NCBI GenBank assembly: GCA_964035545.1
Contig: OZ037768.1
Location: 10,324,741-10,388,740, forward strand
Length of the DNA: 64,000 bases
Direction of reading: 5' to 3'
Source of the DNA: Bugula neritina
Taxonomy: Eukaryota > Animalia > Bryozoa
Part shown: positions 345-39,453 of the stretch, piece after piece
How positions within the stretch are numbered: position 1 is the first letter of the stretch
How the letters are laid out: every line of letters begins with the position of its first letter
Program-made: the position numbers and the translations under genes
Notes under the pieces: model-generated
What the model saw: only the letters and a program-made list of their open reading frames with translations
Databases searched by the model: none
Told to the model about the DNA's origin: nothing

Positions 345-435
345 ATGATGGCAGGTATTCTTCGGAGCAGATTGTTATTTTGGTTCAAGTTGTTTGTTTA
401 TCTCTCAATGTCAACTTTTGGAACAGCTGCGCAAT
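345..435 (+). CDS. Exon 1 of the CUB receptor: signal peptide
   Basis: [30 protein letters not shown] followed by a phase-1 donor T|GTAAGT. The phase matches the first CUB exon (T+CA = Ser). Confidence 0.75.
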
Positions 436-3400
436 GTAAGTATATGAACACATTCGAACTTATGTAGTTGTTTCAAATAACTTTAGTTGTGGGCTGAAAC
501 ATTTATATTTTAGAATACATTTTACAGCATGTATATGTATATTTTTTAGCCAAGCAAAATTTATAGATAATCTTGATCAAACTAATATAAAAACTTGGAA
601 ATTTGTCAAACTTAGGTGATGCTTTGTTCAGCCTTGAGTTGCAGTACAGCCTTCCAGTTAAAGTTTTCAATTCTCATATGTACAATATCTTGCCTAAGCA
701 AGAGCATACAATGCTTATCATATTACATTTTTTAAATTTCATTACCAAAATAAATCCAAAGCAAATTTTTGAAAAAAATTAAACATTAACTTATCACTTC
801 AGTACCCGAGTTAACAAACATTATAACACTTTGAACTTTTAGATACAAGACAATATCTATATAAGTCGACGGTTTTTTTAGTTTAGAGGAAAGCAATCAG
901 TATAAGTAAGTTACTTGTTCTAAATTATTGGGTTTAAGGACTGATGGAGGTTGACAATTTGCCTAAATTAAATTGTTGGATTTAGGTAATAAAGGTTGTT
1001 AGCAAGGTGTTAGCAATTTGAAGTCAAAATAGAATCATTAGGTTTAATTGTTTGAAAAGTTGACTTGGCTAAAGAAGTTACAGTATTACCTAGTTTCCTC
1101 ATATTATGATAACTAATTTGTCAAAATAATTGAATGGTATATAATGCTAATGAAAAGCAGTAGTTTACTCAATCCTACCTATTTTAGTTCAATGCTTCAA
1201 CTTTTAATAATTTAGTCTAATATTTAACATTATAATCTGTTCCTTTACTTTATCTACTTATAATTACAGACCCAATACTAATTTGTCCTCAACTGTTTAA
1301 ATGTTGCCATTCCATGGTAAAAAGTATTAAGCACGGAATTCTAGACTGCAAGCCTACTCCTCAGTTTTTGTGATGTTTAAAATGTTAATATTTATAGTTT
1401 ATAGAGCATGCTTATATTTTAAGGTCTAATTGTTGCAGCGCTTTCTTGGCAGCAATAAATATCAAATGAAACTTTCTGCTTTCTTAGTTTCAAGCTTTAT
1501 CAACTAGAGTTATTCAAGCTGCTAGGTGCAGAAATTCATGTTTTTGTTTGGATTTGAAATGCAACAGCTTTATTTCATAGCAAAAATAGCTTCCCATGTT
1601 CAGTTATAACTGGCAACTATTTAAAAAAAACTGTAATTTGGTACCAACTGCCAACTGGAAACATTGGGACATGTATGTATGCCTTTCCTAACCTACAGCT
1701 ATACTTGTTATAGAGGTTTTTAACTTTCCAACATAGGAAACAAACTTGAAATCTTATTTTACTATCAACACTTTCAGCAGTTACAATCTCTTTAGTCAAT
1801 CAAAAAATAAATAAAACTAACTAATTTATAAGAGCTGTAAATATAAACTAGGTTGACAAACAAGCTTTTTAAGTCTGTTGAAAATTTATGCATATATAGT
1901 TTAAAGATGGAGCTTTTATTTATGGCATTCTACCTAATTGAAGCAATCCAATAAATTTTAGACATGCTCAAGAAGTTTTTAGCTAAATTACAACACATAA
2001 TGGTTGATGGAGAATTATTAGCTGTATCAGCCTTTGAATAGAAACAAAAATTTTCAAAAAAGCAGAAATTCTTTTATTTTGTGAAAAAGGCTTATTACAA
2101 AACAATATTTTAGTTTGGCACAATCGTTTTGTATAATGAAGTTATAATAGGTTGTAAATATTGCAATTATTCAGAGTCTTTGGTGGTGCATTTAAAACAT
2201 TACATTAATATCTTGGTTTGCTTACTGCAATATAACATAAATTATGTGGCATCCAGGTTTTAAGCAATGCCTGTTATCTAAGATATGTTTGTCATTTATG
2301 AATGAACATGTCCAACACCCTCCAAACTCTCCAAATTAGGAGACACAATCCTAATATAAGAAATTATACTATTTGAGAATAATAATGTTTGAGCATAGGC
2401 ACTATAGTTAATAAGAGAGATTATATGAGGGACTAAATAGCATTGCCAAGTGGTTTTTGTCTTTTGGTAGCCACCATGAAGATGGTGTTTCAAGGGTAAT
2501 TAGTACAGCTATAGAGTTGTGGTTTTGTTGACATTGCCTACAGCTTAATCATAATCATCTGTTTTTGCTATAAGTACTATAGTTGTTATTATTTAGCTAT
2601 TCCTGTTATAATAATTATCTCATTCAACTATGTAGCCATGGTCATGAGAAATAACTCTAGTTAGAATGTTAGATGAATGTATTTTGGGAGGAAATTCATT
2701 TTACATCAACTATAAAAATAATGCTGCAACATTTCGTATGATTAACCTGCTTCCTTCTTTATATGTTTAAACATATTGCACTAGACCACCAATTTAGTGT
2801 GCTTTGAAAATGCTGAGACAATTTTGTGCATCCAAATGGTTTTAGTCAACATGAATAACTTTTTATTGAAGGCATCTCAATTTGTAGCTATAAACACGTT
2901 TTTATGACAAAACTGTTGATGAAATTGGCATGCACTTTGGTAAATAAGGAAACAACTTCAAAAGACATACAAATAAAGCAGCTTATATAGTTGATATTAT
3001 AGGATCACTTATGACATTAATGAAATTAGCATAGAGCTAGTCTTATGTCATTGAGTATGCAGAAAACACAGAAAGGTAGACAACTTCTAATACTTATGTG
3101 AAAAAGCTGACTAAAATTAGTTAGAAGAGCAGTTGTTATTGGATAGATTGTAGAATTCTTTTATACAAAACTAAAGACAGGCAAGGCATCTATAGCTATA
3201 AAGTTATTTAAATATTTCAATAGTCTTGCTGCTGTCCTACGACTTATATGTAATCATGTTGATTTTGCTATACATGATAATGTTTTTAAATATTTGTAGC
3301 ACGTCTCTCAAGCTAATAAATAAATACCGTTTGCTGTAATCAGATTTAAGAAATCTTGTAAATTTTCTTTTGAATAATGATTCTAGTAAATCTTTTTATT

Positions 3401-39400: not shown

Positions 39401-39453
39401 AAGACGCAGAAGATAATCATTTGCTAATTGAAATTGAAGACACACACATATAA
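345..39453 (+). CDS. Multi-exon gene: type I membrane protein with 16 tandem CUB domains, mucin-like linkers/stalk, TM helix and short tail (~2278 aa)
   Basis: Manual GT-AG splicing gives one open frame (6837 nt incl. stop). Exon 1 345-435. CUB exon pairs A(197 nt)/B(151 nt): 9212-9408/9503-9653; 9755-9951/10044-10194; 10386-10582/13253-13403; 13599-13795/14381-14531; 14646-14842/14953-15103; 16761-16957/17057-17207; 17399-17595/17689-17839; 23780-23976/24070-24220; 25488-25684/25780-25930; 27501-27697/27791-27941; 29514-29710/29805-29955; 30176-30372/30810-30960; 32530-32726/32821-32971; 33160-33356/33446-33596; 34280-34476/34570-34720; 36933-37129/37214-37364. Thr/Ser exons: 18228-18332, 24886-24969, 26587-26670, 28601-28684, 33825-33908, 36507-36590. 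Stalk 38050-38535; TM 39073-39166; last exon 39381-39453. CUB motifs: CGG.L....[21 protein letters not shown]...YDFLKIYD...HCG...V.FQSDGS.NGNGW. Confidence 0.88.
3520..3664. mobile_element. Palindromic (hairpin) MITE-like element, ~145 bp
   Basis: The left arm TGTTCTATAAGCAGCT...GAGAGCAGTAGTTTG...TGGAGTT is the imperfect reverse complement of the right arm AACTCCAG...CTACTGCTCTCAG...AGCTGCTTAGAAAACA, with a very short loop. Confidence 0.65.
5001..5187. mobile_element. Small MITE (TGTGCC arrays) nested in the hAT relic, copy 1
   Basis: Termini are reverse complements of those of 5437-5755; imperfect 9-bp flanking duplication ACCTGTTCC/TTCTGTTCC. Confidence 0.5.
5437..5755. mobile_element. Small MITE with G-rich core nested in the hAT relic, copy 2 (opposite orientation)
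   Basis: Subterminal GGCACA arrays face TGTGCC arrays; core of GGGTTTG/GGAGTTTG-type repeats; 9-bp flanking duplication ATTGCGGGT/ATTGTGGGT. Confidence 0.55.
7094..7185 (-). mobile_element. Short tRNA-derived SINE
   Basis: Minus strand has an A-box-like TGGTGTAGTGG and a degenerate B-box (ATTTGAGCCC). It is flanked by a 19-bp direct repeat TTTTCATTAATATAATTAA (7075-7093, 7186-7204). Confidence 0.6.
7309..9129. mobile_element. Foldback-like non-autonomous element with ~430-440-bp inverted arms and a TA-rich core
   Basis: Termini CAGTGTGGTATATTAAGAGTGTTG / CAACACTCTTAATATACCACACTG; perfect 8-bp TSD TTGGCTAT (7301-7308, 9130-9137); arms about 7309-7750 and 8701-9129. Confidence 0.9.
7749..8700. 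repeat. (TA)n microsatellite and A/T low-complexity array
   Basis: About 950 bp consisting almost entirely of TA/TAA/TATAA units. Confidence 0.97.
9212..17839 (+). CDS. CUB domains 1-7 (two exons each, no linker exons)
   Basis: Seven A/B exon pairs of identical length (197+151 nt) with phases 1-0-1; 116 aa per module. Confidence 0.9.
10614..13206 (-). mobile_element. Truncated Gypsy-like LTR retrotransposon (3' LTR, PPT, accessory ORF, end of pol)
   Basis: 491-bp LTR at 10614-11104 (TGT...ACA), abutted by a C-run at 11105-11120 that is a polypurine tract on the minus strand. Pol-end-like motif [17 protein letters not shown] at ~12890-12945. Truncated at ~13207. The Gypsy assignment is inferred from the 4-bp TSD and the motif; no RT is present. 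Confidence 0.75.
11717..12579 (-). pseudogene. Disrupted accessory ORF of the LTR element: acidic N-terminus plus zinc-finger-like motifs
   Basis: Three ORF pieces join across one frameshift (~12330) and one in-frame TGA (11993-11995): ...[47 protein letters not shown]... Confidence 0.55.
13827..14317 (-). mobile_element. Solo LTR, same family as 10614-11104
   Basis: 491 bp, colinear with 10614-11104 (about 35-40 mismatches by manual count); TSD ATAT. The empty site AAATATTGTTCAAAACATT is visible in the paralogous intron at ~17621. Confidence 0.88.
16287..16657. mobile_element. Possible solo LTR or other insertion
   Basis: CpG-richer segment bounded by TGTT...AACA with an internal TATATAA; the flanking duplication is only partial (CTAT/ATAT). 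Confidence 0.3.
19174..23252 (+). pseudogene. Copia gag-pol polyprotein (Gag, two CCHC knuckles, PR, IN, RT, RNase H) with a frameshifting deletion in RT
   Basis: Motifs [14 protein letters not shown] and [14 protein letters not shown]; MVDCGATSH; WHRALGH...C..C; [22 protein letters not shown]; [13 protein letters not shown]. The frame breaks at ~22641 and resumes as [13 protein letters not shown]...GYVDADWGG...SSCEAEY...[14 protein letters not shown]...NPADVMTK. Confidence 0.93.
21316..21652 (+). repeat. 96-bp (2x48) coding tandem repeat, ~3.5 copies, in the IN-RT linker
   Basis: ([32 protein letters not shown]) x3.5. Confidence 0.93.
23780..37364 (+). CDS. CUB domains 8-16, interspersed with 84-nt Thr/Ser-rich linker exons
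   Basis: Nine further A/B exon pairs. Linker exons ([14 protein letters not shown]...) are phase 1-1 and follow CUB8, 9, 10, 14 and 15; a 105-nt version follows CUB7. Confidence 0.88.
30006..30100 (-). mobile_element. tRNA-derived SINE fragment related to 7094-7185
   Basis: Minus strand reads TGGTCTAGTGGTTAGAGCACTGGTTTAGTAA...GTTCAAAAACCAG (A-box-like and B-box-like). Confidence 0.5.
35246..36338. mobile_element. 1093-bp insertion, probable solo LTR
   Basis: TGTA...TACA termini and 5-bp TSD ATATA; absent from the paralogous introns (e.g. ~18060 and ~33660). Confidence 0.7.
38050..38535 (+). CDS. Mucin-like stalk exon of the CUB receptor
   Basis: 486-nt phase 1-1 exon encoding (TTSTTPT)x12 plus further Ser/Thr/Pro-rich sequence; acceptor ttacag, donor G|GTATCT. 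Confidence 0.85.
38097..38348 (+). repeat. Coding 21-bp minisatellite, 12 copies ([14 protein letters not shown])
   Basis: Unit ACAACTTCAACTACACCAACT repeated 12 times. Confidence 0.95.
39073..39453 (+). CDS. Transmembrane and cytoplasmic-tail exons of the CUB receptor
   Basis: [32 protein letters not shown] (hydrophobic helix plus basic stop-transfer) spliced in phase 2 to [23 protein letters not shown]. Confidence 0.8.

Follow-up and report, generated by a model that had tools for sequence, protein, structure and literature searches.

Organization of the CUB-array gene

The 64,000-nucleotide stretch of Bugula neritina DNA analysed here (GenBank assembly GCA_964035545.1, contig OZ037768.1, positions 10,324,741 to 10,388,740 of the forward strand; referred to as the window, with position 1 as its first letter) carries between positions 345 and 39453 what its sequence indicates is a single-copy, spliced gene for a predicted type I membrane glycoprotein dominated by 16 nearly identical CUB domains. 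The 42 exons of the model have AG/GT boundaries throughout and join into a single frame of 6837 nucleotides (2278 amino acids) in which the only stop codon is the terminal one. The protein runs from a signal peptide through the 16 CUB domains, with six Thr/Ser spacers interspersed, to a mucin stalk of 161 residues, one transmembrane (TM) helix and a tail of 26 residues. This bears out the initial annotation, made from the letters alone, which had described one frame containing all of these elements and an almost invariant CUB core. Each CUB domain is encoded by two exons, A (197 nucleotides, phase 1-0) and B (151 nucleotides, phase 0-1), and all modules are phase 1-1 cassettes, any one of which can be skipped without loss of the frame; no open frame runs through the A-B intron in any of the 16 copies. 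The six spacer exons (84-105 nucleotides) are found only after CUB 7, 8, 9, 10, 14 and 15 (6 of the 15 internal junctions). The features are as follows, placed by exon ends and frame unless another basis is given.

345..435, + strand: exon 1, with the start codon and a predicted signal peptide, 30 codons, phase-1 donor (sequence; frame fits exon A1)
9212..9653, + strand: CUB1 (A 9212-9408, B 9503-9653; PF00431, E 2.9e-14)
9755..10194, + strand: CUB2 (A 9755-9951, B 10044-10194)
10386..13403, + strand: CUB3 (A 10386-10582, B 13253-13403; a 2.7-kb intron holds an insertion)
13599..14531, + strand: CUB4 (A 13599-13795, B 14381-14531)
14646..15103, + strand: CUB5 (A 14646-14842, B 14953-15103)
16761..17207, + strand: CUB6 (A 16761-16957, B 17057-17207)
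17399..17839, + strand: CUB7 (A 17399-17595, B 17689-17839)
18228..18332, + strand: Thr/Ser spacer exon after CUB7, 76% Ser plus Thr (composition, frame)
23780..24969, + strand: CUB8 (A 23780-23976, B 24070-24220) and spacer exon 24886-24969
25488..26670, + strand: CUB9 (A 25488-25684, B 25780-25930) and spacer exon 26587-26670
27501..28684, + strand: CUB10 (A 27501-27697, B 27791-27941) and spacer exon 28601-28684
29514..29955, + strand: CUB11 (A 29514-29710, B 29805-29955)
30176..30960, + strand: CUB12 (A 30176-30372, B 30810-30960)
32530..32971, + strand: CUB13 (A 32530-32726, B 32821-32971)
33160..33908, + strand: CUB14 (A 33160-33356, B 33446-33596) and spacer exon 33825-33908
34280..36590, + strand: CUB15 (A 34280-34476, B 34570-34720) and spacer exon 36507-36590 (also RNA joints of these classes)
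36933..37364, + strand: CUB16 (A 36933-37129, B 37214-37364; also RNA joint 37127-37212)
38050..38535, + strand: mucin-like stalk exon, 486 nucleotides, 161 residues, 58% Ser plus Thr, 21-nucleotide tandem repeat x14 (RNA joints at both ends)
39073..39166, + strand: TM exon, a 19-residue stretch of hydropathy 3.0 and then basic residues (RNA joints 38533-39071 and 39164-39379; single copy in the genome)
39381..39453, + strand: tail exon to the stop codon, with an EDNHLL dileucine-type motif and C-terminal THI (RNA contig runs on into the 3' untranslated region, UTR)

The full model has 65 cysteines, 64 of them inside CUB domains, and a strongly acidic ectodomain (233 acidic versus 80 basic residues). 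It contains only CUB, Thr/Ser and TM modules, with no SEA or EGF domain, and no dibasic cleavage site was found in the protein. The stalk of Pro/Thr/Ser tandem repeats of the O-glycosylation type (glycosylation being predicted) and the single TM helix are those of membrane-tethered mucin-like proteins as judged by sequence.

Transcript evidence

Contigs from two RNA-Seq runs of one sample were placed on 33650-39640 and contain GT..AG joints at the predicted places for A16-B16, B-stalk, stalk-TM and TM-tail, and also for B-A and spacer-A. The gene is expressed. In the stalk and tail the RNA sample is about 9% different from the window; what is seen is therefore the same gene spliced in a diverged Bugula lineage, and it is in that lineage that the joints from CUB to stalk, TM and tail confirm the linkage of the array to the TM exon claimed at the outset. 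The contigs are short, and the count of 16 units comes from genomic DNA and not from RNA. The link from exon 1 to A1 across an 8.8-kb intron is plausible: the phase fits, exon 1 encodes a credible signal peptide and intron 1 offers no other candidate exon. A second, TM-less 3' end was suggested by the greater depth of the stalk contig than of the TM-tail contig (2417 versus 301, and 429 versus 119), and is not claimed because both differences are explained by depth being averaged over long contigs that include UTR (1841 and 1006 nucleotides) if most transcripts end about 230-280 nucleotides in. The last large intron also holds a stop-free, AG-preceded stretch (38853-38990) that could be an alternative exon; no RNA contig covers it at 90% likeness.

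The CUB unit and its calcium-type site

In a six-frame scan of the window the core sequence quoted in the initial annotation occurred exactly 16 times, identical in every case, always in the + orientation and within the interval 9271-36992. Over the whole unit, in which 89 of the 115 positions are invariant, the copies are 86-98% identical as protein (mean 92%) and 88-97% as DNA. Exon A scores 53.8 bits with the Pfam CUB model (PF00431; cut-off 21.4) over model positions 1-60, and exon B weakly matches the remainder. Each unit has four cysteines (positions 7, 33, 56 and 79), a net charge of -10 and two N-glycosylation sequons, and the variants DGSV and DGSS of the last loop alternate among the 16 copies.

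The Tyr, Glu, Asp and Asp residues of the calcium site are invariant in all 16 copies. The Glu and both Asp were placed by alignment to PCPE1 and cubilin, and the spacing of all four matches that of Y61, E89, D97 and D134, which form the calcium site of the GPR126 CUB domain, sites of this type being known to bind a Lys of the partner (PMC6954182). By its ligand residues the unit is thus a predicted member of the calcium-binding CUB subtype. Its third cysteine, on the other hand, stands five residues ahead of the Tyr-Asp pair, not two, so that the loop departs from the canonical C-x-Y-D pattern. Among 1011 CUB loops from the retrieved proteins 92% have the cysteine two residues before the Tyr and just one has the shifted form, that one being this gene's own homologue; a comparable shift, of four residues, is present in a TM CUB array of Patiria.

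Selection and exchange in the array

The ratio of nonsynonymous to synonymous differences (pN/pS) in pairwise comparisons among the copies is 0.022 for the exon A core, 0.19 for exon B and 0.53 for the N-terminal flank (0.19 overall), and the copies diverge by 4% in the core and by about 30% in the adjacent intron. Duplication or another artefact of assembly is ruled out by the distinct introns and insertions, by the size of this intron difference and by the fact that no two units are identical. Copies 1 and 8 have identical cores followed by introns only 73% alike, and copies 9 and 10 differ in seven codons beside identical introns. The four-gamete test is failed by 508 of 903 informative site pairs, rising from 0.4 of near pairs to 0.65 of far ones (permutation p 0.0002). 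The uniformity of the copies is due both to strong purifying selection and to exchange between modules, and the array has a mosaic history.

A homologous unit from another Bugula sample (JGI contig) shows 4-10 core changes against the 16 copies, the mean among the copies themselves being 6.3. It has four private differences from all 16, every one of which changes an amino acid; four changes in one unit are too few for a signal and are not significant. This unit has a 1.1-kb insertion of its own in the A-B intron (540-1650 of its contig stretch), and array insertions therefore differ between lineages.

No 17th close copy of the unit exists in the 216-Mb genome, in which the TM-tail region is likewise single copy. 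The nearest Bugula paralogues, on C7 and C3, have two and three CUB domains and agree with the gene in their exon phases and in having Thr linkers; the three-CUB paralogue (C7:3483000-3490100) is preceded by repeats of Pro and Thr and ends in a hydrophobic C-terminus resembling a glycosylphosphatidylinositol signal. Judged by sequence, this bryozoan family of small surface proteins with CUB domains and Thr linkers is the likely source of the array, which would have arisen from a one-CUB, phase 1-1 exon pair and grown by tandem duplication plus repeated exchange at the scale of exons.

The size of the array might be mainly a by-product of unequal crossing-over, with one or a few CUB domains sufficient, shorter forms made by alternative splicing or early polyadenylation, and the number 16 devoid of functional meaning. 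The cassettes are skippable in frame, the nearest paralogues manage with two or three CUBs, a sense-oriented long terminal repeat (LTR) element sits in mid-array, and homogenised arrays of 3-30 CUBs, found in many unrelated gene models, have evolved repeatedly. We nevertheless regard this explanation as very improbable, as selection acts on all copies and none of the 16 has a stop codon, frameshift or damaged splice site although their introns have received insertions.

Relation to named systems

The gene is not cubilin: it has no amnionless-binding N-terminal segment and no EGF repeats, its CUBs are nearly uniform and it has its own TM helix. Both proteins have a long CUB array, calcium-type sites and CUBs split over two exons, and the best match among solved structures is cubilin CUB5-8; the CUBs of cubilin, however, are about 36% alike as against 92% here, and the TM exon here is spliced in RNA. 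Cubilin N-termini and EGF domains match only a locus on another contig, C5, where many divergent CUBs follow and which is the genuine cubilin of this genome, and have no match in the window, so that the view of one TM gene distinct from cubilin is upheld. Two amnionless-like loci are present in the genome (C3:13975318-13978005 and C2:4366258-4369245).

DMBT1 (SALSA, gp-340) is excluded as an identity by the lack of an SRCR array and of a ZP domain in the exon model. The likeness is one of design, near-identical cation-binding modules separated by short Ser/Thr spacers and avidity gained by repetition, although the module is SRCR there and CUB here and the bryozoan protein has its own TM helix and tail. 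DMBT1 has 13 modules 88-100% identical, with glycosylated spacers of 20-23 residues; the affinity of a single domain is low and the avidity of the whole is high, and bacterial binding is 30-45% weaker for alleles in which the number of modules is reduced (PMC7043408, PMC5435793). DMBT1-named models of pigeon, rays and carp contain homogenised CUB arrays.

Sea urchin EBR1 is likewise excluded, since the exon model has no ADAMTS propeptide, no metalloprotease (ADAMTS-type protease) region and no TSP1 domain. The initial annotation had taken homogenised extracellular repeats, as in abalone VERL and EBR1, for a hallmark of recognition receptors. VERL repeats ZP-N domains, not CUB domains. Homogenised CUB arrays recur in many unrelated gene models and are no special sign of gamete or self-recognition receptors, so that this generalization is overstated. 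EBR1 does have near-identical CUB-TSP1 repeats, 97-99.9% identical within a species, with no identity shared between species and with species-specific turnover (PMC13672419). Here the pattern is instead one of purifying selection and near-conservation of the unit in a diverged Bugula lineage, with no such turnover.

These data also bear on a partner-specific receptor in reproduction or symbiosis, whether for sperm-egg recognition, uptake of maternal nutrients by embryos or holding of bacterial symbionts. The EBR1 repeats provide a precedent, embryos of B. neritina take up nutrients by endocytosis in a specialised zone (PMC3489856), and the private differences of the other-lineage unit all alter the protein. 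Those four changes do not reach significance, however, the diverged unit lies within the copy-to-copy range where EBR1 repeats would be unshared, and there are no polymorphic loops of the kind found in allorecognition genes. A role of this type is in our view improbable, gamete recognition being less likely than DMBT1/SALSA-like or cubilin-like binding.

Similar arrays in other animals

No protein more than 50% identical appeared among the best 150 hits of a HMMER search of 1.84 billion proteins, and no close orthologue is on record in that set as far as sequence likeness can tell. Other sequence searches returned one genomic fragment of the same gene and otherwise cubilins and DMBT1-like proteins, a metagenome scan gave only CUB exons unrelated to this gene, and a literature search found no paper combining 'bryozoan' with 'cubilin'. 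Internal homogenisation is common among the protein hits, with arrays 60-98% alike in models from stingray, frog, pigeon, coral, hagfish, fishes and snails, and CUB-only arrays with one TM helix occur in Patiria, Saccoglossus, Ptychodera and Haliotis; Babylonia has proteins of CUB, Thr, Ig and TM parts with NPxY tails. Examples, all of them unnamed 'cubilin-like' models, are:

Patiria XP_038071601: 30 CUB, TM; a shifted loop cysteine
Saccoglossus XP_006821495: 17 CUB, TM; C-terminal TPSV
Haliotis XP_046351491: 7 CUB, TM
Babylonia XP_076436087: 9 CUB, Thr stalk, Ig, TM; NPxY tail

Such unnamed models share with the Bugula protein a CUB-only or nearly CUB-only ectodomain, partial homogenisation, a single TM helix and a short tail, but are less than 50% identical to its unit, are less uniform and have different tails; none is characterised according to the searches made. 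The initial annotation had likewise not recognised the architecture as a named gene.

A counterpart in another bryozoan is a locus of Watersipora subatra (around XP_067941959; OY755164.1, about 64.80-64.83 Mb). Its CUBs, 17 or more in number, form near-identical repeats of four each, after which come a mucin exon some 500 codons long, EGF exons and a TM exon. It resembles the Bugula gene in its homogenised array, its two-exon units and its Thr linkers followed by mucin exon and TM, and differs in that the repeat comprises four distinct CUBs, in its EGF domains and longer tyrosine tail, and in an identity of about 45-55%. The exon tree is mostly unresolved, with two Watersipora unit types grouping weakly with the Bugula unit (85/74), and kinship of the two genes is weakly supported by sequence. 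The RefSeq model XP_067941959 spans just 8 CUBs of this longer locus. The Bugula array is undescribed as far as the searches reach and appears to be a lineage-specific variant of a recurrent design; in sequence, its 16-unit single-CUB uniformity, TM helix and remodelled loop place it at the extreme of the arrays found.

Proposed function

Calcium-type CUB sites in cubilin grip Lys or Arg residues of protein ligands. The interpretation that we somewhat favour takes DMBT1/SALSA, and with it cubilin, as its functional model: a protein of an epithelial surface that would depend on calcium, bind at many sites and with high avidity to a single repetitive and probably basic determinant, and probably carry it into the cell. 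The 16 conserved calcium-type sites and the DMBT1 precedent make avidity for one repeated ligand the natural reading, and to this extent the earlier proposal of a high-avidity receptor stands, its emphasis on gamete and self recognition being overstated. Each CUB would bind calcium and, weakly, one basic determinant; the O-glycosylated spacers and stalk would keep the array at a distance of roughly 100 nm or more from the membrane; and 16 equal sites would supply avidity for a repetitive ligand such as a microbial surface, a multimeric host protein, or a particle of matrix or food. Clathrin-mediated endocytosis of the receptor with its cargo would be driven by the dileucine motif of the tail, and the C-terminal residues may bind a PDZ scaffold. 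EDNHLL, of dileucine type, and THI, of PDZ class I type, are pattern matches only, which arise singly in 6% and 3% of shuffled tails and together in 0.2%.

Several points weigh against this interpretation. The tail motifs were selected post hoc and are absent from the TM CUB arrays of other animals; the shifted third cysteine may reshape the calcium loop; and recombination alone can homogenise repeats, while selection signals that the protein has a function and not which one. An unlikely alternative, though one to be taken seriously, is a structural protein of surface coat, adhesion or mineralisation, i.e. an acidic, calcium-binding, heavily glycosylated mucin, tethered to the membrane, from which glycocalyx, the attachment of the cuticle or the organic matrix of the skeleton would be built, with an array that perhaps binds itself and a tail that merely recycles or positions the protein. 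The mucin stalk and spacers and the excess of acidic residues would suit such a role, as would the Watersipora counterpart, whose homogenised array is joined to a long mucin exon, EGF and TM in the manner of membrane mucins. The near-invariance of the binding-loop half (pN/pS 0.02) nonetheless exceeds the needs of a spacer, and no shedding cleavage site was found. A more specific form of multivalent binding with uptake, which we consider improbable, is a self-anchored, self-internalising counterpart of cubilin-amnionless that evolved separately in Bugula, in which the 16 equal sites with the remodelled loop would capture a single specific partner of central importance to the animal, either the surface of the bryostatin-making symbiont or a maternal protein for the brooded embryo.

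Mobile elements and neighbouring genes

The intron before CUB8 contains, outside the protein, a mobile element recognised by its sequence features:

18920..23531, + strand: copia-type LTR retrotransposon

The element lies in the gene's orientation and is young (4 mismatches between its 272-bp LTRs, a target duplication of 5 bp); a gag-integrase-reverse transcriptase frame encodes 1159 residues and the last part lies in a separate frame. The A3-B3 intron has a GC-richer insertion of about 2.1 kb (approximately 11100-13230) that resembles a decayed mobile element and is missing from the otherwise matching A4 intron, and intron 1 includes a (TA)n-rich tract of about 950 bp within a palindromic element (7749-8699). 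The gene is flanked by one family, with one member 5 kb upstream and six downstream (42200-64000), the latter being an A/B pair triplicated in units of about 7.4 kb that are 91-93% alike. The family has no Pfam hit and gives a weak lead (a match scored 0.83) to N-formylglutamate amidohydrolase-like proteins.

Significance

The design recurs across animals (snails, sea stars, hemichordates, corals and vertebrates) and its logic is already known from DMBT1 and cubilin; a near-identical CUB array plus TM helix is a recurrent unnamed design concealed by the label 'cubilin-like'. The Bugula gene is also a good example of exon-limited homogenisation through selection plus exchange. Bryozoans have almost no characterised surface receptors, and the gene offers a testable target in which a single unit of 115 residues represents the whole binding region, so that one recombinant domain could identify the ligand. 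Its importance would be greater if the true ligand were a symbiont, sperm or a placental nutrient.

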